In this document: positions 22,501 to 64,000 of the stretch, one piece after another
Layout of the letters: the number at the start of each line of letters is the position of its first letter
Position numbering within the stretch: the first letter of the stretch is position 1
Assembly (NCBI GenBank): GCA_001643675.2
Contig: LSRY02000017.1
Coordinates: forward strand, 310,001 to 374,000
DNA length: 64,000 bases
Reading direction: 5' to 3'
Source of the DNA: Monocercomonoides exilis PA203
Taxonomy: Eukaryota; Protista; Preaxostyla
Position numbers and translations under genes: made by a program
The notes under the pieces: generated by a model
What the model was told of the DNA's origin: nothing
Database searches by the model: none
What the model saw: the letters and a program-made list of their open reading frames with translations, nothing else

Positions 22501-22637
22501 GGTGTACAAAAATCATTCCTGCAAACTGGCAATCGGAACACAACTTTTGCATCCAATCCACATATTTCCTTTCCCGATGCTTCTTTTGTCTCACTGATAG
22601 CAATAATACATGTAAATATAATAAGAACTAACTTCAT
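13557..22637 (-). CDS. 3026-aa intronless receptor-like type-I membrane protein: signal peptide, beta-helix (pectin-lyase/Pmp-like) repeat ectodomain, single TM, degenerate TKL-like kinase C-lobe (pseudokinase)
   Basis: N-terminal MKLVLIIFTCIIAISE. Five CG-x5/6-C caps (e.g. CGSEEDPCET, CGKPSLPCAT) and repeated GG(G/A)(I/V)(Y/x) motifs. TM WALVVIVIFAVLFLIVLIGFVIFVV followed by RWRK. Kinase subdomains VIII-XI are present (LRWKAPELL, SFSIGMMLWECLTLQIPF, GERP, DRPSL), but no GxGxxG, VAxK, HRD or DFG. Confidence 0.88.
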   Translation of the reverse strand: MKLVLIIFTCIIAISETKEASGKEICGLDAKVVFRLPVCRNDFCTPENNQNSMVLSTFVAVNCSVSTASVLQIQQEGKACFLVCEGSRLDVAGCMILISSQMSPFVVVEGSINSVNLTIQTSRPFTPIQQLICSSFIKSERDGIGSITLCDSSFSSFELESAPFLSPNVSCFVKASGLKMANISVASGAQREMDFRARTETTIEGCSFFRVLDVIDGGILRSVNSPCASLRATNTSFERSARTMNVHESGGRNMTRQPLGAGETHIFTDCEWFSTGYSSYGSAIHLDGYSKLECIQCSFKNMSHGGDGAVDVQSAAGVKMLGCNFSHCISEGNTGGMIIFQLKGDYHLSECTFFECKASANYAGGLRIQQSSGNANEAIEKCKFIKNKAGSYCGGLFLEETSNMYLISECEFEGNAANGTGTGVFEGGGGGIRLNSASWMEAVPSPKFISFCFFTRNFAACGEGSDVKIKNYLLKGSPFESSFSTTPSKRVFYNDSQTDYDAWLPTVRITYARTDGITGPVCGTTQTNPCNTIEQAYNMIEKGAEGTVNILRSTYSSMALFVGGGDISFKGESESECVISTELLNSLECLFTLDSGSMGLSLVTIRHNAVESSSSLFVMRTGAQMLTLKDVIISEIDDEQTHSFNVSPFKVIFEKMKMENCLIEDIGLGDCPLFKEEEESGVWRGMMGNVTIQRIYKMRGDGAIFSARSERSDSWELENTTFRNCVCKEGNGGSIDWRIDESGTFKIGRGNVVTEICECGAEKGSCEEKGSGGGIYLELSSPSTVFEIANVGFENNHAVQGVNVFIASNQLELVPKGRYGFVSLLSGDVHEVEGVGDTNNATLVIPIVCYLLDVPRSEIYVSAPGADHPQCGHTFFECRTLNYPIEREESTPADGTTTSTIKIGNGVEVGSTVVFSKMERVVEGIGGDGSLVVEGGAACKGDEEGCVGVFVVLKETRMRKIELVMPSVLEHYETIFQLKGETLNLSECVFIFGVGIEVSYVGYNLIVVEKGEVNVTSLRLASMRFGKPVIKANGGLSSVSLKNVELNDITFEGEMGFVVCREGSALTGESMIVSESEMGGCSMICAGSNCIARMRECKWNLCNFVNSGIIKEIEAKEISIWGCNGSNIKVSEGEGGMVNGVVGEGGMVDVWNTSIEGCVAEKGNGGGMRVELKGDAQLKIRSEEEVTLMKKCSAGEEGMMNGGGCGGGMWVGIEGERCRFDLSGVRFEENRARSGRDAFVVCDDLRRVVNGSSFSFSRGISDRENSLMGKDRQKFLNEVYLFIFIDGYSSSVIEVESETGDDGMWCGMENCPCRSVDCGIGRLGGEGEKKIVISGSTTVEKVGDASGVRIEGKDNKKKKVVVEKGIEGEGESVLDSKGLSVFVNVGFELPGSFEQRREVVINSGTANGVLEMELCSFLMQEGEEEAIEYRIIRSSGQALRMKWISINNIRTKKSLIDLSLLGMEQNGAESESVSISNCSFGSLSVVGADESAVICAEVRKVMKIEQSNMSDITGGESMSGGAVRVNIHDSGMIHVKEGMIERCAAEKVRGGKGGWLHVNCSERRGGTSFKFEDVKFVGNEAFVGKNMFILDSDLNVTVRSETFAIDVEGIEDDQNLFVGSDEKRISTDLLRFVIEYKSERIVVWEKGDDVVRCGSEEDPCETLEMGLKHIERGGEKKVVRVKEKIRVEREHDLSGIDVESVGAGYDEMEYGTVVMGSEGESGAKVCLRNSGTITLRALEMCVMNVLGSGEAGMIVSEGRKVEWKDCSISWKGKREGMGNVAFCVVKKGELEMKRFKVSSFFGKRSVFVVGREVVSVIDEFTVTEATLESGSLLEIEGEEANGGGEVRMKNCSIGSVEGEGTDSSVISSRNGSGVKLVVEDSLIEACNSGRSSKGGAMLFELNEGGLFHVVNTSVKQCGCSVSEGKGGGVYLKTELRGELDYVFDGVIFRRNTAFIGNDVFIVCDCIERQINETQFNIDFRDVEFIRQNAIYGMDAGEHKEEAMDLMSLIVKYQSDTIVVSSKEGKGGSNEQQCGKPSLPCATIGFGLRHLTHDFFSQVFVDDESMIDEEIELDTLTLSGMHEVQSLVVVKGRMNCSKEMIVETRGQVYVRWIRFTFEEEESTSTPHPTPHSSFMKITSGKTSISMCSFEGARSAEREMVEVLFCLIFVERGKCSMGNVSVLWLSFLNEAAMIMEEDTEVNVLIFRNIESNKDCFKIIGVANVKVEKVEAGNVKIKNGWLMNVSSGEPGSNNREENKLSFSIFSSSFDNITCVGESTGAVDVEGMEGNVEFSNCSFGGCSSKRKKGKMISLLMSKNIQMRQCLFDGEINEKQPNEEVDVCKWNESVIEVKKSSGEIMDTSFVNCSGGGLSIWEGSIVIEKGEFMNNNPSIEKYPSIRRNILCSDSEVLNVVSLKGGDGVLPNTSLWILDEGCELGGIIEERASSLFIPVVKEARNETASDGRTIITLTGRLLLPCNISLHLSFKNGVEEVIETNKIGERESVSESEIGAVVSSDQMAAMGAETEVSVSLLFGKIDSPSTTSSFILKNASETNKKGDEIIVNSGKEGKSSWALVVIVIFAVLFLIVLIGFVIFVVRWRKVKNEAEDLREIVNDNIKKDPKAFEMVTMEMSPEEQWRRAEREAEKKNEERIKKRVYAKSLGHSESSEHLLSESGSTEYILGRDSDKIPDWALEKVEEEEETRKRTPSPSISSTSTTDTSDTESTFVRGEDLCPTTSSMSNLVDVMACSSPHEKLIVDLRDSLFMLLHGRNEKKEMAIGSPQEREMTAAQILFWVANLALHSFDEMKNPLSSLSNLSPHIVLFSEHMVICIVMHSDLLSDDSESSSISSSTVVTSTSDCSTVNRNGKDSPPPSSAFEDEDDNFKKECLRWKAPELLMNKKREATKESVSFSIGMMLWECLTLQIPFGECEPVVAGQKIINGERPEMSMIEGFTFYELVKSSLATAGNDRPSLLNLKRECFQRFPKDAIVFTVSDAITFENTFDVMEEKGKKVKIKKKDSNETIEESGIYS

Positions 22638-47362: not shown

Positions 47363-50027
47363 ATGGTGTTTACCGTCCAATATTTTCGAATACAAGGGTT
47401 TTATTAATTTATTCTTTCATTATTATTATTATTATATTTTTAAGGCCCCTTGGAAAAATATATCTTGCAGCAAAAATAAATCGTAAACTTTCGAGGAAAT
47501 TGGCCATTCAAACGGATATTGCCAAAATGGCAAGAATGATTGATGATGAAACGGACAATCAGATGCATCAAGAATCTCAACTGACATCAGCAATGAAAAT
47601 GTGTGGATATCTATATTTTGGGCTCGTGAGGATTTACACCCGCAAGCTTCAAATATTTAGCGATGATCTCTTATCATTCCGTACAAAAATGAGCATTGTA
47701 TGAAGAAAATTTTATTCTTATTATAATGTTATCTGACAATTACCTTTTTTTTAATTGTTATCAACATATTTTAGACTCTTCAACCACCTTCAATATCTCT
47801 TCCATTACACATAAGGCAAAAAAGAAAAGCAAACAACATTCTTCCTGATAATTCTTTGAATATGCAATTGATGGATTCAAATCCTTTTGATATTATTGGC
47901 GCTCTTAATGTAATGGAATCATCTGCTTTTTCTTTGTCAGACTCTTTGCAAGATCATCAGAACTCTACAAGTAATGAACAAGATTCTCTTTCGTCTACTC
48001 CTTTTTCGACATTTGGAAAAAATTTTGATCGAAGACATGTTTTTGGGGAAGATTTAGATAATCTAGGAATTGGTGTAACGAGCGAAGCTCTGATCGGATT
48101 TGGATCTGGATTTTATTCTGAAGATGCTTCATTTTATTCATCACAGAAGGAAGAAACTCCACCAAATGGAGAGTTAGACAACGTACGCATTTTTGAAGAA
48201 GATGAAGAAGAGGATACAGGAATTGCATATGGAAATGATGATATTGGTGTTGAAGATAACGATACAATTGATGATCTAATAGAGTATGGTCAAGACTACG
48301 ATGAAGGTCAGCCTATTGTGCAAGAAAGAGAACGAGTTTTCGAAAGAACAAAAGAAATTTCACATTTGGCCCAAGAAAAGAATGTTAGATTGAAAATAAT
48401 GAAGAATCCTCAAGGTGGAGGAAATGTGAAACATAAAAGACTTACACCGCTTTTTCAGATAACTGATTTGGTCCAGCAGAGAAAAACACCTAATTTTGAT
48501 GGAAAGCCATTAAAGACACCTCTTGTGGCAGCTGAAGTTCATCGGAAGAGTGAAGAAGAAATGGAAGAAGAGCTTGCTCATTTGGAAACAAAAGTTGCAA
48601 AGAAGTACAAGGGACAGATAATCGACGACTTAACTGAGATCGGAGGTGAAGAGATGAGGCTTATTATCAGTAGCAGTGCGATACTTAGTCGAAAGACACC
48701 AAAACCAAAAAAAATAATTGATATATCTATTGACAAAAGTCATAATTCAACCGAATTGGGTTCAGAAGCATCCTCACCAACCATTGGAGCGAAGAACGAG
48801 CAAAATTTGATTGAATCAGAAAAAATCCCTTCTGAGTTAGAAAGCCAAAGAACAGTCTCATCTTGGTCTGAATTCAACAAGTCACAAGAATCCGTGGAAA
48901 TAATGCAATCTCCAGATGCATCACTGCCACTTTTTCCGAAATCTTTTCCATTAAACACAAAAATTCCAACGGCTGAAGCAGTGTTGGCCGAAGCATTTCG
49001 TAAAGTTGCAACAAGACGAACGTTTCGGGCAAGTTTATCAGATTCAGAAGATAGCGATAATGATCTAGACATGGAAACATGGAGGAGGAAAAACAAGGAA
49101 GACGAGGATAGTGAACTGGGGAAGAGTTTAACTCCCAGCATTCGCAATGAAGCAGAAGACAATTTCAGTTATACAGAAAGGGCAGGGCTCAGATCAATCA
49201 CTTCGTTTAGTGAAAGGATAAGCACAGCTCTTTTCTCAGAAACAGAAAATTCTCTTTTCTCAGCTCATGTCCGCAGAATACATACGACAACATCACCGTC
49301 AATTTTATTAACGCCTAGCGAGTTTATTTACACTTCGATGTTATCTCCGAAAAAGATTGAAGAACGCGATGAAAACAATGACCCGTTTATAGAAATGGAC
49401 GACAACGATTTTTCGGCAGATTTACCAGCAAAACAAGTTGAACTGCCCCGTAGCCCTCTTTCAGATTCTGAGACAATTACTCAGAACGATCACTTTGAAG
49501 ATGCCATCAGCGAAGTCAGCACAAATTCCTCAAGTTCAAGTGAGAAAATGACAGCAAGCCCGATTTCATCTGCTGGATCAGTCAATGAATCTGGTACTCG
49601 CAGCGAAAAGGGAACACAATTTTCTTTTTCAAAGCTATCTAATAGAATGTCTGAACAGCACAATAGAGAATATATAATTAAGCAGAGCAAGGTTCTCGAT
49701 GAAACAGCTCAGGCTTTCTGGATGCATTTGCATAAAGTGCTTCAGAGAAGAATGCCTAAAACACCTTCAAACACAACATCGCCTGCTACGAATAGAGAGA
49801 ATGAATTTGGAGGTGCTCAGCAAAACGATGAAAAAAATAGAAAAAGGAAAAAAACAGACTTAACTTTTACAAAGCTTTTAAAGGGATGCAAAAGGAGGAC
49901 AGTTGCGCTTGCTTTTTCGTCATTACTTTCTTTATCTGCTGTAGGACTAGTTGAACTTAAACAAGAATATCCTTATCAAGAGATTTTTATTTCTGACTCG
50001 TCTTCAGCAGACAAAGGCTCTTCTTGA
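47363..50027 (+). CDS. Alpha-kleisin cohesin subunit, Rad21/Rec8 family (3 exons)
   Basis: Spliced N-terminus QGPLGKIYLAAKINRKLSRK...TDI...MKMCGYLYFGLVRIYTRK (Rad21/Rec8 N domain). Central IIDDLTEIGGEEMR resembles the STAG/Scc3-binding segment. C-terminal winged helix LTFTKLLKGCKRRTVALAFSSLLSL...VELKQEYPYQEIFI. Introns 47398-47444 and 47698-47774. Confidence 0.92.
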
Positions 50028-50789: not shown

Positions 50790-53700
50790 TCACTTCTTAG
50801 GTTCCGCAGGTTTTCGTGGAGGTGACAAAAGATGCGATGATTGTCGGGACGTAAAAGCACGAACAACATCGGAAGCATCTATGTGAGATTTCCGAGGAGG
50901 AGACAGAAGTCGAGACTTGGACTGACTGTTTGGTGGAGACATTAAACGTAAGACGGCTGACTGGAACTTGCGTCTGCTTGGGCTGGTTGGCAATGCACTC
51001 GAAGAGTTAGATGGAGAAATGATTCCAGGAGACAGCACGCGCTCTGGTGAAGCAACCCCCGAGGCTTCATCAAAGCGAACGGATGATCCCTGTCTAAAGA
51101 CGCGCCGTCTAACACGTCTGTGTCTTCCTGTGTCGATTGTCGATTCGTACAGTGGTCTCCTACGGCGGCGAGGTCTGTCTACAGTTTGGCCAGATGCTTC
51201 TGCTGCCAAAGATGTTGTTGAAGATGATTGCATTCCAAGATCGGTTGTGGACAGTTGTGATGATGACGGCTGTTTGCTTAACAAAGTGGATCTGTTGCGA
51301 TGCAAGCGGCGAGTACTGTGAGAATTGCTGATTCCAGCCATTGTAGATTTAACATGAGAGTAATCAGTAACATAAGTCTTTGGTACAAAATAGCCAGAGG
51401 CATGATGCTGCAACTGTTTAGGATCTCTTGGTTTGATAACTCTTCTCGATTCCGATTTTGTAATTCCTGCAAGATTTGCTTCTGATCCATCAACTCCGTA
51501 CTCTTCGAATCCATGTGTAATCTCTGAGAGAATATCATCCTCGCGTTGCTCCTCTGTTTTTCCTCCTTCTTGTTTAGTGGACTTGTTATCTTCCTCAGCA
51601 TTCTCACCAAGGAACGTCTGTCTTCTTCGGAGTCCTCTTCCTTTCATGCCAGCTCCATCCAACAGACCGGAAGATGCTTGGCGCTTAATGCCAGCAGTGG
51701 CAAAGTTATTAACTGAGGCTGCACTTGCTCCTGCTTTTGTGGGTGCAGGGCGAGCCAATGCTGCCGTAGATGAAGCACCGACACCACTTGAAGGAATAAT
51801 AAACGACTGTGACATCGAATCTCCCATTGAAGCAATATCAGTCTGCAATTGATTCTGATCCTCTTCATAATCGCCATCAGATCCTTCGTCATATTCTTCG
51901 TCTGACATGTAATCGCTTTCATCTGAGCCCATCTCTTCCATCTCTTCCTCGTCGTTATATTCTTCTTCATCTGAAAGGTACTCTTCTGGTGCATATTCCT
52001 TTTCTTCTTGCTCTCCTACAGCAAACGAAGCTTGTCTCTTGCGTCTGTTCATTACGTCATCGCTGACAGCTGTCGATGATGAAGGAGCTGCTGCATCCAA
52101 TCCCACTGAAGCCATTGAGCCCTGAGCAGCTTTTTGTTGAACACTCTCTCCAATGGCTGCTGATGTCGATGAAGGTGATGCAGATTTTGACAGAATTGCA
52201 GCCGCTGCGGCTGATGGTGCAAATGACATCGTTCCAAGTGCACCTCCTAATGTTGATCCCAATTCATTCGATTCTTCACCTTCTGGAATCGCTTCTCCAA
52301 TCTCATCGTTAGCGTTCAAAACTGCAAATGATGCTTGTCTTCTCCTTCTGTTGAGCGGTCCATCAGCGCGAACTGATGCAGATGTTGGTGCCGAGGCGTT
52401 CGCTCCTAACGAAGCAGCAGAAGCTTGTGCTGCTCTGTCACTTCCTTCAGAAATACTGACAGAGGAAGAAGTTGTTGGATGAGAAGCAGTTTTAGCTAAA
52501 ATTGCTGCTGCTGATGCAGAAGGTGCAAATGGACGATCTGCAAAGCCAAGAGAACTGCTTTCTGCAGACGATGATTGTCCAATTGTTTCCAGCAGATCTT
52601 GAGTGGCTTCTCCTTCAGCAGCAGAATCAGAAGGTGAGATTGCAACAAAGGACCCTTGCCTTCTTCTTCTGTTCATTGGGCCATCAGCACGTGCTGATGC
52701 AGAAACAGGGATGGCAGCATTGGCCTCGAGTGAGGCAGATGATGCCTGTGCTGCTCTATCAGCAACTGCTCCACTGCTTGTGGTTGAGGATGCAGTTGGA
52801 CGAGATGCTGCCTTTGCAAGAATCGCTGCAGCTGCAGCAGATGGTACAAAGGAGAACTCAGAAGTATCAGATGATTCAGAAGAACTGCTTTGTAATGGAT
52901 GCACCGAATTCATTTCTGAACTGGAGGCGTCTTCTCCTGTCATAAGGGCATTCAACGAGTCAGAAGAAGACAATGCAAAGTCGCTCGCTGTGAACGATGC
53001 TTGTCTCTTTCTTCGGTTCAATGGGCCATCTGCACGTGCAGATGATGCAGTCGTGGCAGTTGCACCAACACCCACTGCAGCTGCAGAACTTTGTGCACTT
53101 CTTCCACCCATTTCAGAAGAAATGGATTTTGATTGGCTTGACGGTGCTTCTGCCAGCGATAGCAGTTGCAGCGAAGCTTGTGATGCTTGTGAGGTACCCG
53201 AAGAATAAGGAACGAATGATACAACTGAACCAGAAGTATTTAATCCAGATGGGACAGATGCTTGATTGAACTCCAATGTGGCTTCTTCTCCACTTCCTCC
53301 AAATATGAGTCCAGATTGTTCACTTGGCTGTTCACCGGCTGTGAATGATGACTGCCTTCTTCTTCTGTTCATCGGTCCATCTGCACGTGAAGACACCGAC
53401 TTTGGTGCTGACGCTCCAGCTCCCAAAGATGCTGCTGAGGCCTGTGCTGTCCTTCCAACAACGGCATCACTTGCAGCAGAAGATGTGTCTTTGGAAGGAG
53501 ACAATGATGAAGATGCAGAGTTGGATGCAGCATGCGCAAGGATCGCGGCAGCTGCTGCAGAAGGCACAAATGAAATTCCAGAAGATTCGGTTGGATTGCT
53601 TTGATCTGCAAGGATAGACGCTAATTCTGGATTGGCTGAGTCTTCTCCTGCAATCAGTTTGTTTAACGAATCTGTTGAAGATGGAGACTCAAGATCATTC

Positions 53701-56700
53701 ACTGAAAATGATGCTTGTCTCTTTCTTCTGTTCAATGGACCGTCTGCTTTAGACGAAGATGATGATGGTGCTAATACATTTGCTTCCAGCTGAGCAGTTG
53801 ATGACTGTGCAAATCTCTCGTTTGTTCCATGGCTCGACATGGATTTTTGTGAATTAGGAGCAACGCCAGATGATGAGGGTTTATTAGCAGATTTCGCAAG
53901 AATGGCAGCTGCAGCTGCTGATGGCATAAACATTTGTGAGTTTCCAGTTGATCCAAGAGCAGAGCTTCCGCTTGATGCTTTTGTCTCAAATGCATCTTTG
54001 TTTTCGTTGTCTTCTTCAGGAATTGTATCAGGAAGTTCATTGAACTGATCAAGAACGGCAAATGAAGCCTGCCTCTTTCTTCTGTTCAGCAAGACATCTG
54101 CACGTGATGACGCTGTTATCGGAGCAGATGCGTTTGCACCCAACGAAGCTGAAGATGCCTGCACTGTTCTTCCTTTCGCACCACTGCTTGCAGACATTGC
54201 AGAAGCAGATGATGCGTCTTTTGACGTTGCTGCTGATTGAGAAGCGGATTGCGACAGAATGGAAGATGCAGCAGAAGACATTGCATATGAAGAGTTTGTA
54301 GGTTCCATTGTTCCTAGTATATTTTCATTGATCTGTGCCATCAACTCAGCGTTTGATTCTTCTTCATCCTCATTTCCATCTTGTGCAGAATCAGATTGTT
54401 GATTAAATGGATCTCCAACAACAGGTGCTGCAGCAAACGATGATTGTCTCTTTCTTCTGTTGATTGGTCCTTCTGCAAATGCAGTTGAAGAAGAAGGTGC
54501 AGCTGCTTTGGCTCCCATTGCTGCAGAAGATGACTGTGCTGTCCGTCCAAATGCTCCACTCGGTGCAAATGCTGAATTTGATGAAAGAACTGCATTACTT
54601 CCAGATGGCGATGCTCCAAATGGAAGAGATTGAGGAGAAACTGAAGATGAAGCAGAAGCAGTAGATGCTGAAGTATTTGCAGCTCCTAACCGTTTCATCT
54701 CATTTTGATTCTTTGTATTTGCAGAGCTATTTTCTTGTGAGAATAACTGTTCTTCATCCACCTCGTCAATTGCATCTGGAAGAAGTCCTGAATGATCATT
54801 AACTGAAAACGAAGTTTGCAATTTTCTCCTATTCATTGGACCATCAGCCAGCGAAGAACTCGTCTTTGGTGCAGAAGCATTATTTGCCAAAGCTGCAGAT
54901 GTTGACTGAGCAATTCTTCTGTTATCGACTTCATTTGTAGCTGATTGTTTCGAAGCTTGAGGAGCATTTGATGAAGACAATTGATTCGATGCAGATTTTG
55001 ACAGGATCGCAGCTGCGGCAGCTGAAGGAACAAACGACATTGCTCCAAGTCCGCTTCCTAATGAAGATCCCAATTCATTCGATTCTTCTGATTCGTCTGT
55101 TGAACTTGCGGGTTCTGTTGTATCTGTAGCTCCTACACTCTCGTTTCTGCCATCGTCAACTGCAAATGACGCTTGTCGCTTCCTTCTGTTCAAAGGACCG
55201 TCAGCACGAGCTGATGCAGATGTCGGTGCAGAAGCATTTGCTCCCAGTGAAGCAGAGGACGCTTGAGCTGTTCTTCCTCCACCAATTGCATTTGGTGAAG
55301 TTGATGATGACAATGAAGGCGTGTTGGATCCAAAGGCAGTTGCTTGTGAGCCTTGTCTTATCTTGCTTGCCTCTGCAGCAGAAAGTTGATCGGACGAGCT
55401 TGAAGAAGACGCTGAAGCACCGTTCGGTGCTGTTTGTGATAGAATATCTCCATTTCTCGTTTCGTCTTTTGAACTATCATTTGAAGGTCTGTCTGTGTAC
55501 AGCAGTGCATCAGTATCAGAAACAGCGAATGACGCCTGTCTCTTTCTTCTCTTCAAAGGCCCATCCGCTTTTGCAGATGACGATGAAGGAACTGATGCAA
55601 GTGCTCCGAGATCTGCTGTTGAGCCGTGTGCTGTTCTGCCGCCAAGCGCACCAAGAGTGTCAAATCCCAAGTTGTATGGTATGTTCGAAGTAGTGCCGTT
55701 GTTCTGCGTGGCTTGGGCTGATCTGAGGCTGGGACTTGTAATGCCAACTGAAGGTTGTTGAGATGATGAGCTTGCCTTTGAAGTTGAAATAGCATTTCCT
55801 GCTGCAGCTGAAATTGCACTTCCAGAATTCATTGCATTCATTGCTTGTGAATCTCCATTAGATTTGAAAGAATCCCCTTCAGGAGAGCTTCTTTGACTTG
55901 ATGATTGTGCAAGTGGTTCATTTGATGAAGGCAATTGATCATTATTATTCACTGCAAATGACTGTTGTCTTCTCTTTTTGCTTGAAGGTCTTTCAACTTT
56001 AGACCCAGCTTTAGTGGGAGCATACTGTCCAGCACCAACAAACGCAGTTGAGCTTTGTGAAAGCTTATCTCCAGCTGCACTTTGAGCAAGATTCTGATTC
56101 TGTGCATTGCGTGCGAAAGCAGATGAGCTTGGTGCCTGAGCGGTAGAAGAAGAAGCAGAAAGCATCAATGGAGCTCCAGTAATGTTTGAAGTGCTTGGCA
56201 TGTTTGATGGTGATGCTGACGACGATGATGATGCTGAAGAAGCTGAAGGGGCACCAGCTAACTGCAGTACAGAGTTGATATCATCGTTCAGACCGTCACC
56301 GCCAACAACAAATGTTGCATGCTTCTTTCTCCTTCCACCAAGTCCAGAAGCAATCGAACTGCCAGTGGCGGCTCCTCCAACAGAAGAGCCAGCAACAGTC
56401 GATGAGCTCTGAGCTAATCTTTCATTCTTTTCTGACCTACCCAATGAATCTGATGATGAAGATGGAAGTAATGATGCCCTTGAAGCCTGTCCAGATGCAG
56501 CCATCGCAGCAGATGGGTTTCTGCCTAATGTGCTGTTGGCACCACCAAATTTGTTAGCAGCGTTTCCGTTTGAAGCAGAAGCTGGATACAACGAAGCATC
56601 TCTAAGTGGCATTCCAGAAGCATCAACATTTTGTTGTCTGCTGCCACTTTTATTGCAGGTTGGATAATCTCCCAAAAATGGCTCTGAAGGCGAAAAGGTG

Positions 56701-59700
56701 GAACTTACCTGTTCTCCAAATTGTTCAGAATTAGGCCCAGCAAAGTCTTGTCTTCTTCGCCCGCCCATCATTGGCCCATCCACAACAGATGTTGATTGAA
56801 GCATCCGTGATGACTGCTGAGAAATCAGGGTATTGTGCTCTGCAGTACGATTGTGGAGAGATGAGGAAGCTTGTGAACCAGATGTCTGCCCAGCAGAAGG
56901 AGCCATTTGTGAGCCAGGAGCCATCCGTGATGCTGCTGCAAATGGTGAGTCTTGTCCTGGTTGAGCTGCAGTTGATCCATTAAATCCTGTTCCTGATGCA
57001 TTTGTCTGATAAGCTGTGAGAGGATTGGCACCAGGCGACCCTGCAGAAGGAAATGGAAACATGAATCCGGCTGGATTTGTATTTGTTCTGCTTTGTGCTG
57101 AACGGTCGAATGGGCTGCTTCCATCTTTGCCAGTAGGAAGTTCGTCATGTTCAAATGAATCATCTCTTCCTCCTTTTCCTGCTTTACCTGCTTTGCCTTT
57201 CTTTGTTTGCGGAGGATTAGCCAAAGGTGAGCGGAACGGTGCAAGTCCTCCAAGAACAGAATTCTGCCTTCTTGGTGAAAATGTTGATGGTCTGTTTCTG
57301 TCTGAATTAGATGACATTTGTGAGTTTGCTTTTGAAGACAATCCATCTGGCAAAGTCTTTTTCGAACCAGACGGTGAGAGCTCAGAGGGCGATAAGAATC
57401 CTGAGGTTGTAAGTGGATCTTCACCAAATGCCATTCGTTCGATGTCATCATCTGTGAGAGGAATATCTGGATCGCTCATAAGATTCGTCCTCGAAGTAAT
57501 GTTTGTATGTTCAAATGAGACAACTGATACATTCGAAACCAAGCCTCCAAAGTTCGGAGACATTCCGTTGTTTCTCAAATCTGCAATGTCAGCTGGCTCA
57601 AAGCCACGAGAATAATCAGGTTGTCGTGGGCCGGCACCTCTGGCACCAAGGCTTGGGAACATTGTTGGTGCTGCAGCTTCATCTGCACTCTTTTTGCTCT
57701 TCCTACGTCCACTGCGCAACAAAGGCTTATCACCCAACAATGCATTCGTTGGTGAAGATCCTTCAGATGAAGAAGGTCTTGACGATGCTTCAGATCTTTC
57801 AGAATCGGACTCATCTTCATCAAACTTCGATTCGTGCAGGCCAGGAACTTTCCCATCCAAGCCATTCATCTCCAGTGGCTCTCTCATTGCATTCAGCTGT
57901 TCTTCTAGTTGTGCTTGCAAATCGTCTGCCATTTGCGCTTTTTGGTTCTTTCTGCTGCGGTTGCGAAGGAAGAGAAGAAGCAATATAATTAGCAGAACAA
58001 GTATCAGTCCGAATATCAAAAACGGAGGCAAAACGGTTGGTGCTCCAATCTTGCTGATCTGAATGGTGATCGGTTTGAACATAACTGCCTGTGTTTTGTG
58101 CTGACTGCCATCATTTCCGCTGTATATGATTCGTGTCCACCATTCCTCGTTCAGCTCAACCAGCGAGCTGTTTATTGGACCATACGCTGTTGATTCTGTG
58201 TGGTACACAATCTGACCAATTGGAAATTCTGTGATATCTGTTTCAAGTGTCTGCCCATCACTTGTGGTTGTATATCTGAATATTTCGAATGTCAGGCAAC
58301 ATGGAAGAAGTGATGTTCCGGTAAACTCAATGGTAATAATATCATCTTCTGGATCAGAGCAACTTCCGTTTGTAAGCGTTGGAATAAACAACCACGACAT
58401 TCTGTTGTTAAATACTGGTCCAGAAAGAACACATTCTCTTTCATCGTTTCCGTTGTCCATAAACATGTTGTCTGATCTCTCAAGTTCATCGTCTGGTTCA
58501 ACGCTTTCGATCTTGATAGTTGAACCACCGTCACAATGTATGTTTCTTCTTGCTGAAGGATAGAAACGAAGTCGAGGGCTGTTGTTTTCGAATGAAGCCA
58601 TATGAATCGTAACGTGTCCTCCAGTAACCGACAATGCACCATCAGGTGAATTCTTGAAAGACGAATACTCGATAGTTGATTTGCAGTTTCCGAGGTGCAA
58701 AAATGAAGAAGTCCAAGAGCAAACTGCTGTTGCGTCAGTTGAAGCAGATATGTTCGTTCCCAAAAACTGTGTTGAATTGATCAGCACTTCCCATCCCTCA
58801 ATCGAGATAACAGTGCCTGGCTGGCTCATATGAGAAGTGCAGCCATCAACGATAGTTCCACTAATCTTCACTTTCCAGCATTCATCGCCTGCTCCACTGG
58901 CATCCTCTATCTTCTGTAAATTCACAATTGCTGGCCCAACATCTTCTCTTGTAATTCCCTTGAGGTTGCAGTTTTCGAAGGCAACAGGATAGTTCACAAC
59001 TCCTGGAGTAATTGGACCAGGAGTACAAGGAATAGCAACCGATGATATGTCAAATAGTGGACCTTCCCCAATTTTTAGGGAATCGACATAAAGAGATGAA
59101 ACAGAAATCTTAGTGTAGTCGTGGATAGTAAATAGTGAGCTGAACAAATGAGCATCAGAAACAGACATATCAATGATGGAAAGATCACCCGTTTCAATTT
59201 CTGCAAACACAAATGGAATGGAATATGTTGAATTGTACTTAATTGGGAACACAAAACTTGACGAATTGATGAAAACGCTTCCAACATCAGATTTCAAAAA
59301 TTGCGGTCTGTTGTTAAGATCTTCTGGGAAGTAAACCGAAACTCTATCAAAACCAAATGTTTCGTTGCTGTACAGCAAAGGAGAATGTCCATCTCCTGGT
59401 TCCATATCTGGTCCAATATACACAATCTTTATCGAGACAAAATCGTCGTCTGTCGCAGCAATCAATGTATCAGAAACATCAATTGATCTGTTGAGGTATG
59501 TGGTAATGCAGATGCGTAATTCCAAGTTCCTAAGATCCTGATCGAGGTGAGTGTATCCATGTGTCATCGTTTTGCAGGGATCCTTCTTTTTCCCACAGAT
59601 TTGTGAGTCAACTCTACCTTCAAACTGGCAATAGATTACACGGTTTTTGAAGTCTCTGAAGAAGAAGCGGATGTCAATGTCATCTTGATACTCGTTGTCA

Positions 59701-62700
59701 TCTCTTCCAACAAATGAATGCTCATCGTAGGTTGAGTCATTATAATCAAAATCAAACTTCTCTTCAATAATTGTCTTTTCTAAGTCCTCCGAATAAATAT
59801 ATATGTTGTTTCCTTCTTCTGCACTGTTATTAGAGAAAAACATATTTGAAAACAGATAATCCATTGTACTTCCATTCAACAAATGCAGATAAATACCACC
59901 TCCTTTTCCATTCACTGGATGTGCAGTAGAATTGGATATATTTGTTGCAATAACATGATATTTACCGTTACTTTCAACTTTAACAAACATGCTTCCACCG
60001 TTGAGGTCATCAGAAGACATAAGTTGGAAATTGTTGTTGTCGTTAAACACTATAACATCATCTGTGCCAATAAGTGCATTCAATACAGTACCATTTTGGT
60101 TAGATGTTGACATTCCATAGAATGTTGTGCTGTTCACCTCCAATACTGTTCCATGATCGTCCACAATCATATGTTCTGGGAAATGAATTTTTTCCAAATT
60201 GGAGTTTGTAATCTGAACGGTAATCCCTGGAGAAACATTGATGAATGGTCGTTCTATTGTCATTTCCCTCACTAGCAATCCATCTGTATAAAATTCAGCT
60301 GGGTCAATCAACTCCACAAAAAAGGATGGCCATCTGAATGTTATGCCTTCAATCAAAGTATTTATAAGTTCTAATCTTCCACCTTGGACTGAAAATAGTG
60401 TTGGAAACACTGCATTCAAAGAGGAAGCAGGAATAAGTTCAACGTTGTTGAAAATAAGCGCATTTTTGTTCGTTTTGAAGATCTTCTCTGCAGGAATGTT
60501 AGAAGGAACAACAACAAGCAAGCTTCTAATTGTTGTTGATGAATTTGTCTCAAAAACTGCTTCTTGGTCAAAATTAGAAGAGCTCGTTGAAGATAAATTC
60601 GTCAGATTGAAAACATGGAGAAGAGAGTTGTTGAATCCTTCTATTATCACCTCTCCTTGATTCTTTAAAGTTTGCCTCAGTTCTGCATTGTTCATGATAA
60701 CAATTTTTCCAACTTTTGTATTTCTGGATCTAACATATGCATATTCAATTGTTTGGCAAGGAGATAACAAAGCACCACATCCTTCGAAGTTTGATCCGTT
60801 AGATTCCTTCACATATACAGAAACTGTAACCTTATCAAAATAATCAACAAGTGTAGTGTTTCGTTGCGTTTGTGTATCAAACCCCCAAATATCATCGATA
60901 TAATCCAATGAATATGATCCATTAAAGCATTGATCAGTTACGTGATCGGTGAAGAATGGTCCTCTCATATACAGGTTAGGCCCTTGAATAGCCTGATTTC
61001 GATCCCAAGACAAAAAGCTAAAGTCGTATATGTATGTGTGTGAATCATCATCTGTCATTATCACATAAATTGCTCCACCGTTTCCGTTAATAGCTGTGCT
61101 GTGTGTGATCGTACTGTTAGACAATTTGATTTCTCCTAGTGGGTCTAGACGCATGTAAAATGATCCTCCGTTATTTTCTTCGGTGCTGCCATAGTGGAAC
61201 TCACTTTCTCCGTCAATCTGCAACTTATTTCCTTCGCGAACGTCAAATATTATCATTGACCCGTTAGATGTTGTTGTAGAGAAATTCTCAAAGGTCGAAG
61301 AGTTCGTAATACATATGCGATTTGCATTGTCACTTTGAATAAAGCTACCCAAAGGCTGTGCACAGTTCGACACGTTTGTATGAGTGAAAATGATTTCGGC
61401 ACCATCATGCACTTGAAATAGCCCTGTTTGATCTGAACCAATCTTGTTGATGACACTATTTTCAAAAGTTACCACGCCATTTTGTCTCGCATCGAGCATT
61501 GTTGAATGTCCAACGAACTCAAATTGGTCAATCATTGAATTTTTAACGGTGAAAGAACCATAAGTTATTGTTATAAAGCGGAAATTTGTTTGATGATCAA
61601 CGCAAACAAATTGGCAAGTATCAAACATCATTTCTCCACCGCTCATTGATACAAACTCTTGTTTATCTGTGCTTTTTGGAAGAATCCACTTCAATTTATA
61701 TGCTCTAACCAAATCCGATTCAGAATTGGAAGAAGTTGCATACACAAGCTGTGTATTCGGATCCACGTATATTGTGGCCTGTGTCTGGTTTGTTGTCATA
61801 AGTACGTTCTTTCCATCAAAATTAATTGTGTAATTCAAAGTAGTGCGCGTCATAACTCGTATCTCTCGTATATTCTTTGCAATAACTTGGCTTTCACTGA
61901 GTCTCCAGTAAGCATAATCCAATTTTCCACATGCAACAATATAATGTCCACATCTGATATGATTCTTTTCGGTATCTTCGGTAACGTCTGTAACGTAAAT
62001 TGCATTGTAAGGTCTGTATAAATAGTACATGAGCGTGGTTGATATGTTTTCTGGTGCATCAGCATTGAATCCCCACAAAGTGTCTCGTGGTGTTTCTTCC
62101 GTAACAAAGTTCACAAACCTTGGATTCGTAACCACCCCATCAAATAAGCAACCATCAACATAAATGTGTTTCCCAAGATTAGCATCACAATTTGTAAAGA
62201 GAAGCGAAGAAAATAGATATACAACCGAAGGATCGCATTCATCTACCCCAAGATAAATGCCTCCTCCATTTCCCAAAGTGTTTTTATTTGCCACACTCGC
62301 ATCAAACGTACAATCTGCAACTGTAAAGTTTCCAGGATTGGCCAAGCGGCAATGCAACGAACCTCCATGGTTGGTAAGCGCGTTGTTTGAGTTGAATGAG
62401 CAGTTTTCAATGATAACATGGTTAATACGATCTCCATCAACATTACGATGTACACTTGTTGGCTCTTCATGACCAAGCCATGTATTTAAAATTGATCCAT
62501 TTCCTTTCTCAGTGTTGAAATTATCGAATCTCGAAAAATTGAAAATGTGAATTTCATCAGGAAGAACGCCTCTGATAAAGCCTCCGTCTGTAAATGTTCC
62601 TGTTGTGAAATTGCAGTCAGAGATGCGGATGCTGCCTCCATAGCTTGCTTCCAATATTCCAGTTGAATTTGTGCCTGCTTCCAAGATATCCTGACTATCG

Positions 62701-64000
62701 CTGCTAATTCCAGTGGAGTTGCAGCACAAAAACGTTATGTCAGCATCATATGAAACTGTTACCAATTGTGATAAACGAACAAAGTGCAAAACGTTCAGCA
62801 CAACCTCTGTAACATTCATTGAACCTCCTGTCGCAGAAAGAAGACCGCACTCAACTGTGAAATCTGGTGCGGTTGATCTTGACGAAATTGTGCAATTGAA
62901 TATGTTAATGTTTCCTCCGCTTTGTTCGAAAAGTTGATGAGTTGTAGATACTCCAGGCATCCAGAAATCGATGTGCCAAAACTGAATTTTCTCTGGGGCA
63001 ACGCCAGAACGTGGGTGGTTTGTAAATTGAGTATCTGAATCAATAAGCATTTTGGAATATGAATTATTACATGTGAAATTCGTAACAATTGCTTGGAGTT
63101 CAACAGTATAATTTAATGTTGAAACATTGACTATGCGAATTTCTCGGATATTTCGAACATTTTTCACCCAATTCTCATCCAAACGCCAATGTGAATAATC
63201 AACTTTTCCACAAGGAAGGAGATCGTGTCCGCATCGAATGTGGTTTTTCTCTGAGTCATCAACATAAATTTCATTGATTGGTCGGAACAGCCAATAGAGC
63301 AATGTTGTGGAAACATTTTCGTTCGCATTTGCATTGTGACCCCAATAAGCAGGACGTGGAGTTTCTCTTGTATACGAATAATTGAACTGCAATCCCCAAA
63401 TATTGCTATCAAAGTTGAAACCTTCGATATAAATATCTGTTCCAAGTGTTGCATTACAATTACTGAACGATGTGTGATTGAATTGATAATCAACTTTGTT
63501 AAAATCATCCACAGATCCAATAATCTCATAATATATTCCACCTCCTCGGCCATTCAAGGTAGTAACTTCATAGTCTGGTGGAATAACAGCTTGATTTGAC
63601 GCTGAATGTGTAGGTGGAGTAATTGGAGCAGTGTATGCTTTGCAAGCTGTAAATATACAATTGTGAGTCTGAAATGCACTTTTCATTGAAGCCACAATAT
63701 AGATTGCACCTCCATCAAATGAATTTGATTCGCAATCACTGAAAGTTGTGTCACGGAAAATAATAGAGTGCTTAACTGTGTTTGTTTCGTTATTTAAATG
63801 ATAATTAAACACAGAGCCATTTGTTGCTGTTGCAACAATTTGAGAAAAATCGCAATTAGCAACAACAGTCTCAACAACATCTTTGTTCAAAAAGTAGCTT
63901 CCCTTTGCTGAAGTGCCTCTTGTAAATATTGAATTGGTTATCTTCATCGACGCTGCATTCGTCAGCCTTATTAATCCAGTTCCTGTAGTTTGCACATCTG
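50790..64000 (-). CDS. Giant (>4400 aa, 5'-truncated) type-I membrane protein: N-glycosylation-rich beta-helix repeat ectodomain, single TM, ~2400-aa Ser/Ala-rich repeat cytoplasmic tail
   Basis: The frame is open to the window edge. GGAIY/GGGIY motifs, four CG-x5-C caps and many NxS/T sequons. TM FLIFGLILVLLIILLLLFL followed by RNRSRK (~58040-57950). No kinase motifs in the tail. Confidence 0.9.
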   Translation of the reverse strand, partial: DVQTTGTGLIRLTNAASMKITNSIFTRGTSAKGSYFLNKDVVETVVANCDFSQIVATATNGSVFNYHLNNETNTVKHSIIFRDTTFSDCESNSFDGGAIYIVASMKSAFQTHNCIFTACKAYTAPITPPTHSASNQAVIPPDYEVTTLNGRGGGIYYEIIGSVDDFNKVDYQFNHTSFSNCNATLGTDIYIEGFNFDSNIWGLQFNYSYTRETPRPAYWGHNANANENVSTTLLYWLFRPINEIYVDDSEKNHIRCGHDLLPCGKVDYSHWRLDENWVKNVRNIREIRIVNVSTLNYTVELQAIVTNFTCNNSYSKMLIDSDTQFTNHPRSGVAPEKIQFWHIDFWMPGVSTTHQLFEQSGGNINIFNCTISSRSTAPDFTVECGLLSATGGSMNVTEVVLNVLHFVRLSQLVTVSYDADITFLCCNSTGISSDSQDILEAGTNSTGILEASYGGSIRISDCNFTTGTFTDGGFIRGVLPDEIHIFNFSRFDNFNTEKGNGSILNTWLGHEEPTSVHRNVDGDRINHVIIENCSFNSNNALTNHGGSLHCRLANPGNFTVADCTFDASVANKNTLGNGGGIYLGVDECDPSVVYLFSSLLFTNCDANLGKHIYVDGCLFDGVVTNPRFVNFVTEETPRDTLWGFNADAPENISTTLMYYLYRPYNAIYVTDVTEDTEKNHIRCGHYIVACGKLDYAYWRLSESQVIAKNIREIRVMTRTTLNYTINFDGKNVLMTTNQTQATIYVDPNTQLVYATSSNSESDLVRAYKLKWILPKSTDKQEFVSMSGGEMMFDTCQFVCVDHQTNFRFITITYGSFTVKNSMIDQFEFVGHSTMLDARQNGVVTFENSVINKIGSDQTGLFQVHDGAEIIFTHTNVSNCAQPLGSFIQSDNANRICITNSSTFENFSTTTSNGSMIIFDVREGNKLQIDGESEFHYGSTEENNGGSFYMRLDPLGEIKLSNSTITHSTAINGNGGAIYVIMTDDDSHTYIYDFSFLSWDRNQAIQGPNLYMRGPFFTDHVTDQCFNGSYSLDYIDDIWGFDTQTQRNTTLVDYFDKVTVSVYVKESNGSNFEGCGALLSPCQTIEYAYVRSRNTKVGKIVIMNNAELRQTLKNQGEVIIEGFNNSLLHVFNLTNLSSTSSSNFDQEAVFETNSSTTIRSLLVVVPSNIPAEKIFKTNKNALIFNNVELIPASSLNAVFPTLFSVQGGRLELINTLIEGITFRWPSFFVELIDPAEFYTDGLLVREMTIERPFINVSPGITVQITNSNLEKIHFPEHMIVDDHGTVLEVNSTTFYGMSTSNQNGTVLNALIGTDDVIVFNDNNNFQLMSSDDLNGGSMFVKVESNGKYHVIATNISNSTAHPVNGKGGGIYLHLLNGSTMDYLFSNMFFSNNSAEEGNNIYIYSEDLEKTIIEEKFDFDYNDSTYDEHSFVGRDDNEYQDDIDIRFFFRDFKNRVIYCQFEGRVDSQICGKKKDPCKTMTHGYTHLDQDLRNLELRICITTYLNRSIDVSDTLIAATDDDFVSIKIVYIGPDMEPGDGHSPLLYSNETFGFDRVSVYFPEDLNNRPQFLKSDVGSVFINSSSFVFPIKYNSTYSIPFVFAEIETGDLSIIDMSVSDAHLFSSLFTIHDYTKISVSSLYVDSLKIGEGPLFDISSVAIPCTPGPITPGVVNYPVAFENCNLKGITREDVGPAIVNLQKIEDASGAGDECWKVKISGTIVDGCTSHMSQPGTVISIEGWEVLINSTQFLGTNISASTDATAVCSWTSSFLHLGNCKSTIEYSSFKNSPDGALSVTGGHVTIHMASFENNSPRLRFYPSARRNIHCDGGSTIKIESVEPDDELERSDNMFMDNGNDERECVLSGPVFNNRMSWLFIPTLTNGSCSDPEDDIITIEFTGTSLLPCCLTFEIFRYTTTSDGQTLETDITEFPIGQIVYHTESTAYGPINSSLVELNEEWWTRIIYSGNDGSQHKTQAVMFKPITIQISKIGAPTVLPPFLIFGLILVLLIILLLLFLRNRSRKNQKAQMADDLQAQLEEQLNAMREPLEMNGLDGKVPGLHESKFDEDESDSERSEASSRPSSSEGSSPTNALLGDKPLLRSGRRKSKKSADEAAAPTMFPSLGARGAGPRQPDYSRGFEPADIADLRNNGMSPNFGGLVSNVSVVSFEHTNITSRTNLMSDPDIPLTDDDIERMAFGEDPLTTSGFLSPSELSPSGSKKTLPDGLSSKANSQMSSNSDRNRPSTFSPRRQNSVLGGLAPFRSPLANPPQTKKGKAGKAGKGGRDDSFEHDELPTGKDGSSPFDRSAQSRTNTNPAGFMFPFPSAGSPGANPLTAYQTNASGTGFNGSTAAQPGQDSPFAAASRMAPGSQMAPSAGQTSGSQASSSLHNRTAEHNTLISQQSSRMLQSTSVVDGPMMGGRRRQDFAGPNSEQFGEQVSSTFSPSEPFLGDYPTCNKSGSRQQNVDASGMPLRDASLYPASASNGNAANKFGGANSTLGRNPSAAMAASGQASRASLLPSSSSDSLGRSEKNERLAQSSSTVAGSSVGGAATGSSIASGLGGRRKKHATFVVGGDGLNDDINSVLQLAGAPSASSASSSSSASPSNMPSTSNITGAPLMLSASSSTAQAPSSSAFARNAQNQNLAQSAAGDKLSQSSTAFVGAGQYAPTKAGSKVERPSSKKRRQQSFAVNNNDQLPSSNEPLAQSSSQRSSPEGDSFKSNGDSQAMNAMNSGSAISAAAGNAISTSKASSSSQQPSVGITSPSLRSAQATQNNGTTSNIPYNLGFDTLGALGGRTAHGSTADLGALASVPSSSSAKADGPLKRRKRQASFAVSDTDALLYTDRPSNDSSKDETRNGDILSQTAPNGASASSSSSSDQLSAAEASKIRQGSQATAFGSNTPSLSSSTSPNAIGGGRTAQASSASLGANASAPTSASARADGPLNRRKRQASFAVDDGRNESVGATDTTEPASSTDESEESNELGSSLGSGLGAMSFVPSAAAAAILSKSASNQLSSSNAPQASKQSATNEVDNRRIAQSTSAALANNASAPKTSSSLADGPMNRRKLQTSFSVNDHSGLLPDAIDEVDEEQLFSQENSSANTKNQNEMKRLGAANTSASTASASSSVSPQSLPFGASPSGSNAVLSSNSAFAPSGAFGRTAQSSSAAMGAKAAAPSSSTAFAEGPINRRKRQSSFAAAPVVGDPFNQQSDSAQDGNEDEEESNAELMAQINENILGTMEPTNSSYAMSSAASSILSQSASQSAATSKDASSASAMSASSGAKGRTVQASSASLGANASAPITASSRADVLLNRRKRQASFAVLDQFNELPDTIPEEDNENKDAFETKASSGSSALGSTGNSQMFMPSAAAAAILAKSANKPSSSGVAPNSQKSMSSHGTNERFAQSSTAQLEANVLAPSSSSSKADGPLNRRKRQASFSVNDLESPSSTDSLNKLIAGEDSANPELASILADQSNPTESSGISFVPSAAAAAILAHAASNSASSSLSPSKDTSSAASDAVVGRTAQASAASLGAGASAPKSVSSRADGPMNRRRRQSSFTAGEQPSEQSGLIFGGSGEEATLEFNQASVPSGLNTSGSVVSFVPYSSGTSQASQASLQLLSLAEAPSSQSKSISSEMGGRSAQSSAAAVGVGATATTASSARADGPLNRRKRQASFTASDFALSSSDSLNALMTGEDASSSEMNSVHPLQSSSSESSDTSEFSFVPSAAAAAILAKAASRPTASSTTSSGAVADRAAQASSASLEANAAIPVSASARADGPMNRRRRQGSFVAISPSDSAAEGEATQDLLETIGQSSSAESSSLGFADRPFAPSASAAAILAKTASHPTTSSSVSISEGSDRAAQASAASLGANASAPTSASVRADGPLNRRRRQASFAVLNANDEIGEAIPEGEESNELGSTLGGALGTMSFAPSAAAAAILSKSASPSSTSAAIGESVQQKAAQGSMASVGLDAAAPSSSTAVSDDVMNRRKRQASFAVGEQEEKEYAPEEYLSDEEEYNDEEEMEEMGSDESDYMSDEEYDEGSDGDYEEDQNQLQTDIASMGDSMSQSFIIPSSGVGASSTAALARPAPTKAGASAASVNNFATAGIKRQASSGLLDGAGMKGRGLRRRQTFLGENAEEDNKSTKQEGGKTEEQREDDILSEITHGFEEYGVDGSEANLAGITKSESRRVIKPRDPKQLQHHASGYFVPKTYVTDYSHVKSTMAGISNSHSTRRLHRNRSTLLSKQPSSSQLSTTDLGMQSSSTTSLAAEASGQTVDRPRRRRRPLYESTIDTGRHRRVRRRVFRQGSSVRFDEASGVASPERVLSPGIISPSNSSSALPTSPSRRKFQSAVLRLMSPPNSQSKSRLLSPPRKSHIDASDVVRAFTSRQSSHLLSPPRKPAEPKK
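52020..56020 (-). repeat. Degenerate ~300-430-bp coding tandem repeat (~12 units) with core ADGP(L/M)NRR(K/R)RQ(A/S)SF
   Basis: The core recurs near 52030, 52335, 52660, 53000, 53350, 53715, 54070, 54445, 54815, 55170 and 55535, with a degenerate copy at 55960. Confidence 0.92.

Follow-up and report, generated by a model that had tools for sequence, protein, structure and literature searches.

Protein tyrosine kinase-like or TKL-like genes are reported to form the largest gene family of Monocercomonoides exilis (PMC6759080, PMC8767320). In ten paralogs sampled for the present analysis, the tail that follows the transmembrane (TM) segment is 217-441 amino acids (aa) long, and GxGxxG, HRD and DFG are absent from all ten, which marks these tails as pseudokinase remnants; the three tails that were scanned match Pfam PK_Tyr_Ser-Thr at the C-lobe only (E 5e-6 to 4e-9). 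The receptor described here, encoded on the minus strand of a 64,000-nucleotide (nt) stretch of M. exilis PA203 (contig LSRY02000017.1, positions 310,001 to 374,000; hereafter the window, whose numbering is used throughout), has in common with this family a homologous ectodomain and a single TM segment with a basic stretch, whereas it lacks the kinase-like domain, its tail is 5-8 times longer, and that tail carries a repeat present in no other member. The repeat forms an ordered array of 11 conserved units, each closed by a basic motif of the type NRR(K/R)RQxSF. We regard this array as an orphan feature that is real, old, selected, apparently expressed and without relatives, and the receptor as aberrant within the M. 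exilis family of beta-helix receptors.

A regular-expression scan of the tail returned 11 strong copies of the motif at motif-to-motif distances of 101-125 aa, in the forms RRKRQASF (six copies) and RRKLQTSF, RRKRQSSF, RRRRQSSF, RRRRQGSF and RRRRQASF (one copy each), ending at residues 2823 to 3991 of the open reading frame (ORF) as numbered from window position 63995; the 11 good units that they close measure 101-143 aa each. Four degenerate basic-Ser/Thr-Phe sites, RRRQDF, RRKKHATF, KKRRQQSF and RRRQTF, flank the array, and the last three of them close degenerate units. The first-pass annotation, made from the letters of the window, had counted 11 conserved units at about 100-125 aa and had named the same four degenerate sites; the count and spacing are recovered, and all four sites were located. 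The units are:

56310-56675, minus strand: degenerate unit U1, ending in RRKKHATF
55956-56309, minus strand: degenerate unit U2, ending in KKRRQQSF
55527-55955, minus strand: unit U3, 143 aa, ending in KRRKRQASF; profile E 2.7e-27
55164-55526, minus strand: unit U4, 121 aa; profile E 3.4e-34
54807-55163, minus strand: unit U5, 119 aa, ending in RRKLQTSF; the sole unit without Arg at -3
54435-54806, minus strand: unit U6, 124 aa, from motif scan, profile and alignment
54060-54434, minus strand: unit U7, 125 aa, from motif scan, profile and alignment
53706-54059, minus strand: unit U8, 118 aa, the best profile match (E 2.1e-39)
53343-53705, minus strand: unit U9, 121 aa, used for the AlphaFold2 (AF2) model
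52992-53342, minus strand: unit U10, 117 aa, from motif scan, profile and alignment
52647-52991, minus strand: unit U11, 115 aa, from motif scan, profile and alignment
52326-52646, minus strand: unit U12, 107 aa, from motif scan, profile and alignment
52023-52325, minus strand: unit U13, 101 aa, from motif scan, profile and alignment
51612-52022, minus strand: degenerate unit U14, with a very acidic D/E/Y spacer, ending in RRRQTF

In the alignment of the 11 units, numbered from the Ser of the motif as position 0, Arg -6, Arg -5, Gln -2, Ser 0 and Phe +1 are invariant, while Asn -7 and Arg -3 are each present in 10 of 11 units, the latter being replaced by Leu in U5; the sequence A-D-G-P-(L/M) directly upstream of the basic cluster is nearly invariant, as are R, A, Q, S, A, P, A, D and N among the 37 residues ahead of the Phe. 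A second conserved block, Ala-rich and of the form SF(V/A)PSAAAAAIL(A/S)K(S/A)AS (SFVPSAAAAAILAKSAS), lies about 30-40 residues upstream and is clear in six of the 11 units and recognisable in two more. The consensus of the first-pass annotation is reproduced by this alignment; the Ala-rich second block is the part that it had not described. Within a unit the order is an acidic Ser-rich spacer, the Ala-rich block, a short Ser-rich stretch and the basic core of about 37 aa with its terminal motif, and the net charge alternates in every unit, from -2 to -10 in the spacer to +2 to +6 in the core. The AF2 model of U9, with a predicted local distance difference test (pLDDT) value of 55, contains two short helices, which cover the Ala-rich block and the basic cluster respectively; the repeat unit is predicted to be intrinsically disordered apart from these two elements. 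An AKAP-like or WH2-like nature of the Ala-rich block was considered and dropped, the block being judged too short and not amphipathic as required.

The core and the linkers have followed different courses: amino-acid identity between units is 63% in the core versus 20% in the linkers, and nucleotide identity 64% versus 39%. Nei-Gojobori proportions of synonymous (pS) and non-synonymous (pN) differences, taken over all 55 pairs of the 11 units, are pS 0.69 and pN 0.24 in the 37-aa core, pS 0.66 and pN 0.41 in the Ala-rich block, and pS 0.65 and pN 0.60 in the linkers, that is, a pN/pS of 0.34 for the core versus 0.93 for the linkers; the linker alignments are unreliable, so that linker pN lies near the random expectation, which does not weaken the contrast between core and linkers. 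Synonymous sites are saturated in all regions, and the duplications are therefore old; Tandem Repeats Finder detected no DNA-level array, in agreement with old and diverged copies. In addition, the invariant residues are written with mixed synonymous codons (Arg as AGA, AGG, CGA and CGC; Ser as TCA, TCG and TCC; Phe as TTT and TTC), which excludes gene conversion or recent slippage as the source of the identity. The core is thus held by purifying selection at the protein level, and there is no homogenisation of the units through gene conversion. Both points had been anticipated: the claim of selection on the motif core, put forward with its own refutation test, is borne out by a pN of 0.24 versus 0.60 at saturated pS, and the claim that recent slippage had not produced the array agrees with that saturation and with the mixed codons.

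No relative of the repeat was encountered elsewhere. In the genome of the organism itself, searched as an assembly of 82,301,135 bases in 101 contigs (PMC8767320 describes the Oxford Nanopore assembly of M. exilis PA203), the repeat profile and a DNA pattern matched only the array-bearing gene, and the juxtamembrane part ahead of the repeats and the C-terminal non-repeat part likewise have no relative elsewhere in this genome. A word-indexed search of 5.8 billion proteins with the tail returned only the annotated model of this gene, P0001, and a profile search of 1.84 billion cluster representatives gave 13 matching stretches, all of them in P0001; among the metagenomes of JGI there were 282 pattern matches, none confirmed. 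The repeat had no match at E <= 1 among PDB sequences and no usable match in the ESM Atlas, Pfam matched neither the repeat unit nor the tail, and the motif strings were not found in a literature text search. The impression of the first-pass annotation that no named family has this architecture is thus upheld for Pfam, PDB and the protein databases, and the check that it had proposed, a search with a repeat profile, matched P0001 only in the own genome and in the protein collections.

The frame that carries the array is open well beyond the tail. On the minus strand it is uninterrupted for 4,401 aa in the window (translation of 50790-63995) and comprises 5,904 codons in all, 1,503 of them past the window end; P0001 has 5,866 aa, a modelled coding sequence (CDS) of 17,601 nt and its ATG (exon 1) at window-equivalent 68607, outside the window. 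The encoded protein consists of a signal peptide, a giant ectodomain predicted to be of the beta-helix type, a single TM segment and the 2,391-aa tail, predicted to be disordered, and its parts in the window, apart from the units, are:

50790-64000, minus strand: in-window part of the gene; stop codon at 50790-50792, the CDS running on past the window
58044-64000, minus strand: in-window part of the ectodomain, modular, rich in Cys and sequons, with GGAIY/GGGIY-type repeats
57966-58043, minus strand: single TM segment, a hydrophobic stretch followed by RNRSRKNQK
56676-57965, minus strand: juxtamembrane Ser/Gly/Pro-rich tail before the repeats, containing RNRPSTF and RRRQDF (56742-56759)
50793-51611, minus strand: C-terminal non-repeat tail with Arg-rich patches, RPRRRRRP (51153-51176) and then HRRVRRRVFRQGSS
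50889-50909 and 50811-50831, minus strand: two LLSPPRK motifs in the C-terminal non-repeat tail

The span of 50790-57950 first given for the tail needs correction at one end, since the first tail codon is at 57965 and not at 57950. Ser makes up 20% and Ala 14% of the tail, which contains one Cys in its 2,391 aa, as against 43 Cys and 51 NxS/T N-glycosylation sequons in the 1,984 ectodomain residues of the window; this contrast, the positive charges after the TM segment and the location of the kinase-like domain of the paralogs at the same position are indicators of a cytoplasmic tail, and they favour the topology assumed in the first-pass annotation. A PP1 RVxF motif in the C-terminal Arg-rich patch was considered by eye and rejected, as the pattern does not fit. 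Within the ectodomain, the deposited model excises a 153-nt in-frame GT..AG 'intron' at 63033-63185 (minus strand); the intron call is doubtful, because the frame is open through it and the 51 aa cut out (RLDENWVKNVRNIREIR...) are homologous to a segment that is retained in the next module (RLSESQVIAKNIREIR...). Over the tail, antisense ORFs of 175-201 aa occur on the plus strand at 52603-53208, 55166-55693 and 57016-57615; the GC-richer, Ser/Ala-codon-rich composition is their most likely cause, and the pattern of selection backs the minus-strand frame.

Four RNA-library runs, all from a single 2024 study, contain the stretch; they probably belong to the metatranscriptome of an M. exilis culture described in PMC12308965. 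In three of the four runs, one contig of 18,239-18,304 nt covers 52300-58250, that is, tail, TM segment and the beginning of the ectodomain, with 100% identity, and extends past this span by about 10,300 nt on the upstream side and about 1,984 nt on the downstream side; its length corresponds to the 17,601-nt CDS plus about 164 nt of 5' untranslated region (UTR) and about 474 nt of 3' UTR, and the starts of the three contigs agree within 6 nt. This pattern fits mRNA better than contaminating DNA; as the contigs show neither strand nor ends, transcription is well supported but not proven. That the tail is continuous with the ectodomain, as had been supposed, is confirmed by the single ORF and by the single contig of about 18 kb that spans ectodomain, TM segment and tail. 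A joint in these contigs described as 'goes back 2789' was examined as a possible rearrangement and rejected; it is a cross-match between units, the U13 region of the contig having been aligned on U5 (54988-55088, within 101 letters). Downstream, a convergent neighbour, an ORF of 723 aa at 47856-50027 (plus strand), stops some 290 nt short of the receptor transcript, whose inferred 3' end is at about 50316, a layout that fits the gene-dense M. exilis genome with its overlapping UTRs (PMC8767320).

The affiliation of the receptor is given by its ectodomain. With the ectodomain module, 59 scored matches were obtained among 2,454 first-look candidates, ORFs of 773-8,211 codons genome-wide, and they include many ORFs of 2,000-8,200 codons, with E down to 1e-30 and 22-34% identity to paralogs; the paralogs also share the layout of a TM segment followed by a basic stop-transfer stretch. 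The homologous modular ectodomain and the single TM segment assign the gene, at the level of sequence, to the giant beta-helix receptor family of M. exilis as a type I member. An AF2 model of one ectodomain module, built with five paralogous modules, is all-beta over residues 120-390 (pLDDT about 80-95; predicted template-modelling score 0.74), and the 50 best PDB matches found for it by Foldseek are nearly all parallel beta-helices, although these matches are weak (E 0.009-0.14, TM-score <= 0.41); Pfam gave no match at E <= 1 over the ectodomain pieces, Chlam_PMP (PF02415) included. Parallel beta-helix surface proteins, such as those with chlamydial Pmp-type repeats, the tailspikes and the pectate-lyase fold, resemble the ectodomain only, through its GGAIY/GGGIY-type motifs and the predicted stacked beta-strands of its module, whereas the lack of a Pfam match and structural matches at E of about 0.01 set it apart from them.

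A canonical receptor-pseudokinase member of the family is also encoded in the window (13557-22637, minus strand), at a distance of 28 kb from the kinase-less receptor; its 3,026-aa ORF has a signal peptide and a Gly/Ser/Glu-rich ectodomain and ends in a pseudokinase tail (RWKAPELL...SIGMMLWECLT). In the region of this member, the GC skew takes strongly negative values (-0.5 to -0.6) over 16-20 kb. In most members of the family the pseudokinase remnant after the TM segment measures roughly 300-440 aa. The first reading of the tail as standing in place of a kinase domain accords with the pseudokinase remnants found after the TM segment in the ten sampled members and with the failure of Pfam to find a kinase domain in the array-bearing protein, whether searched whole or in pieces. 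The loss of the pseudokinase is not unique, because three other very large members, MONOS_5695 (on contig C63) and ORFs on contigs C14 and C25, have kinase-less disordered tails of 511-664 aa, all without an array; it is the ordered array that is unique to the receptor described here and sets it apart within the family. These extra-large receptors with disordered tails suggest a subclass. The C14 and C25 members have open frames of more than 5,500 codons in the DNA examined and acidic/Ser-rich tails of 511 and 664 aa, both with long poly-Lys or KKDKK tracts.

The closest paralog, MONOS_5695, is 27-30% identical to the array-bearing protein over repeated ectodomain modules, shares with it the membrane-proximal region and the one TM segment, and has likewise a kinase-less disordered tail, Ser/Pro-rich in this case; the tail (L021:5596-7557, minus strand) is, however, only 654 aa long and lacks the array (profile score within the shuffle range; BLASTP E >= 0.18). 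It contains a single ...SPLSQKMERIRQSSTF stretch loosely like GPLNRRKRQASF (RxRQxS..F). An ancestral single copy of the unit in this tail was considered and rejected, the BLASTP alignment, although suggestive, being non-significant (E 0.55) and the profile score falling within those of 500 shuffles; the stretch, not significant against shuffles, is possibly a relic or a convergent site. The MONOS_5695 model P0002 (7,885 aa) is about 1,500 aa longer than the 6,350-codon ORF on C63, and its N-terminus has weak sub-threshold Pfam matches to RSN1_TM and RSN1_7TM; P0002 may be an annotation fusion of two adjacent genes.

Regarding the class of the motif, R-x-R-x-x-S/T-hydrophobic is the consensus of the Akt/SGK/RSK/S6K kinases, and R-x-x-S/T-hydrophobic fits CaMKII. 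The former pattern is present in the array with Arg -5 in 11, Arg -3 in 10, Ser 0 in 11 and Phe +1 in 11 of the 11 units, whereas the optimal PKA pattern (R-R-x-S/T-hydrophobic) is contradicted by Gln at -2 in all 11; the motif thus fits, as first read and by textbook consensus, the RxRxxS-hydrophobic and CaMKII types, and is not optimal for PKA. The 14-3-3 mode I pattern (R-S/Ar-x-pS-x-P) is absent, since Arg -3 occurs but the +2 residue varies among A, S, T and V, with no Pro in any unit; binding of a non-canonical kind is conceivable. Present in the M. exilis genome are no fewer than five genes for 14-3-3 proteins and at least three for kinases that bear the AGC C-terminal domain (Pkinase_C), and the presence of AGC-type kinase genes makes a kinase-site reading plausible, nothing more. 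By the extent of its conservation, the conserved element of about 37 aa plus the second block is more than a phospho-site; because a bare kinase consensus needs no 37 conserved residues, the flank of about 37 aa and the Ala-rich block probably serve to dock the partner.

These features lead us to favour, tentatively and at somewhat less than an even chance, a tail that forms a multivalent platform, for docking as well as for accepting phosphate, on a receptor that is itself catalytically inert. In such a platform a basophilic Ser/Thr kinase that recognises Arg -5, Arg -3 and Phe +1 would act on the invariant Ser, with AGC-type (Akt/S6K/RSK) or CaMK-type enzymes as the candidates; phosphorylation would neutralise the basic cluster or create sites for phospho-readers, and through its 11-14 equivalent sites a receptor without a catalytic domain of its own would respond in a graded or cooperative manner. 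A more specific and bolder form, which we consider improbable though worth stating, is that Ser-based signalling resembling that of immunoreceptor tyrosine-based activation motifs (ITAMs) evolved independently in this amitochondriate protist, graded phosphorylation of 11-14 RxRxxSF modules, each with its own docking flank of about 37 aa, recruiting or cross-linking phospho-readers, for example 14-3-3 dimers, under the membrane. Several points weigh against the phospho-acceptor platform. Basic clusters commonly serve in lipid binding, as nuclear localisation signals (NLSs) or in polyampholyte behaviour, functions that explain the same conservation equally well; without Pro at +2 there is no canonical 14-3-3 mode I site; and a literature search found no relevant M. 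exilis phosphoproteomics. Moreover, a shorter DNA pattern of the RR(K/R)RQxSF type gave 80 matches genome-wide versus 78 for the reversed control, 10 of the 80 lying in the array-bearing gene, and because the motif is no more frequent than chance outside this gene no wider substrate set sharing it is indicated; in database searches no ortholog was found, which makes cross-species conservation unusable. A predicted complex between one core peptide and a 14-3-3 of M. exilis scored 0.02 in modelling without controls and is no evidence either way.

The main rival to the phospho-acceptor platform is a phosphorylation-independent electrostatic scaffold, in which the periodic basic clusters with their Phe would bind acidic partners (inner-leaflet phospholipids, the tubulin tails of axostyle or pelta microtubules, or actin), or else would pair with the acidic spacers of the tail itself and let it condense beneath the membrane as a blocky polyampholyte. 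The regular alternation of +2 to +6 cores and -2 to -10 spacers in every unit, the disorder of the unit in the AF2 model and a conserved block far longer than a kinase site are all in keeping with it; nevertheless, charge patterning needs neither an invariant Gln -2, Ser 0 and Phe +1 nor the exact order NRR(K/R)RQ, and charge-driven regions usually keep their composition and not their sequence, so that we judge this scaffold rather unlikely, while taking it seriously. A functionless expansion of repeats within a low-complexity tail, or else an artefact of annotation, could be invoked for an orphan sequence without homologs whose Ser/Ala-rich composition is common in the disordered tails of the same genome, yet the pN/pS of 0.34 in the core versus 0.93 in the linkers at saturated pS largely refutes it, and neither a frame open for 5,904 codons nor RNA-library contigs that match the ends of the gene suit an artefact; we give it very little credence.

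The remaining readings, which like functionless expansion we consider less likely, take the basic cluster as a signal of another kind. RRKR and RRRR fit the monopartite K-K/R-x-K/R pattern of a classical NLS, and phospho-regulated NLSs with a nearby Ser are well known, so that the tail, once proteolytically released, might enter the nucleus or sequester importin-alpha, possibly under the control of the adjacent Ser; against this, neither a cleavage site nor a DNA-binding or transcription-related domain is seen, some copies are as far as 2,000 residues away from the membrane anchor and nothing points to their release, and we know of no precedent for a 2,400-aa Ser/Ala-rich tail with at least 11 NLS copies, which makes an NLS array highly improbable. 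Equally remote in our estimation are Arg-based (RxR) retention signals of the endoplasmic reticulum, masked by 14-3-3 or phosphorylation, that would govern surface delivery: RRKR contains RxR, and Ser phosphorylation beside RxR with release by 14-3-3 is an established switch in channel trafficking, but such signals act only over a narrow range of distances from the membrane and need no more than a single copy, which leaves 11 copies over 1,300 residues unexplained. The least credible of all is a polyprotein precursor from which a kexin/furin-type convertase, cutting at R-x-K/R-R, would free peptides of about 120 aa; RRKR with the Q behind it agrees with the furin/kexin consensus, and the regular unit length recalls multi-copy pro-peptide precursors, whereas the sites would lie on the cytoplasmic side of the TM segment, where convertases do not act, the Q-x-S-F after the supposed cut is also invariant although a cleavage site does not need it, and a six-frame scan of the genome, in which introns could hide one, found no P_proprotein domain.

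The largest gene family of M. exilis consists of receptor-like proteins with dead-kinase tails, and the array-bearing member offers a concrete and testable handle on their signalling, with motifs of identical logic kept constant by selection while their surroundings drifted. If the serines are phosphorylated, the array would point to the basophilic kinase pathway responsible and provide the first mechanistic entry to oxymonad surface signalling; the receptor would then be an unusually clean natural case of multivalency, with 11 equivalent modules in one disordered tail, useful for relating site number to response. If they are not, the tail remains a well-defined orphan module under selection, with a putative binding function.

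Among known systems, the transmembrane adaptors (CD3-zeta with its ITAMs, LAT, SIT, PAG) offer an analogy, as the tail shares with them a membrane-anchored, inert and disordered layout with a repeated putative kinase-target motif; the motifs of the adaptors are, in contrast, Tyr motifs, with 3-10 sites in fewer than 250 residues and small ectodomains, and they have no sequence relation to the tail, the sole Pfam match to SIT being sub-threshold and lying over the TM segment. Substrates of AGC kinases with RxRxxS/T sites and multi-site 14-3-3 clients share Arg -5, Arg -3, Ser 0 and Phe +1 with 10 of the 11 units, whereas they have one to a few sites and the tail has tandem 37-aa modules without Pro at +2. 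The basic effector domains of the MARCKS type, which work as an electrostatic switch, resemble the units in their basic cluster, Phe, phosphorylatable Ser, disorder and membrane proximity, although the domain of MARCKS, a lipid-anchored protein, is a single 25-aa stretch containing several Phe and Ser residues, and the cluster in the tail is shorter (4-5 basic residues) and repeated. In summary, we view the array-bearing tail as a putative scaffold and a new addition to the transmembrane scaffolds with repeated short linear motifs.

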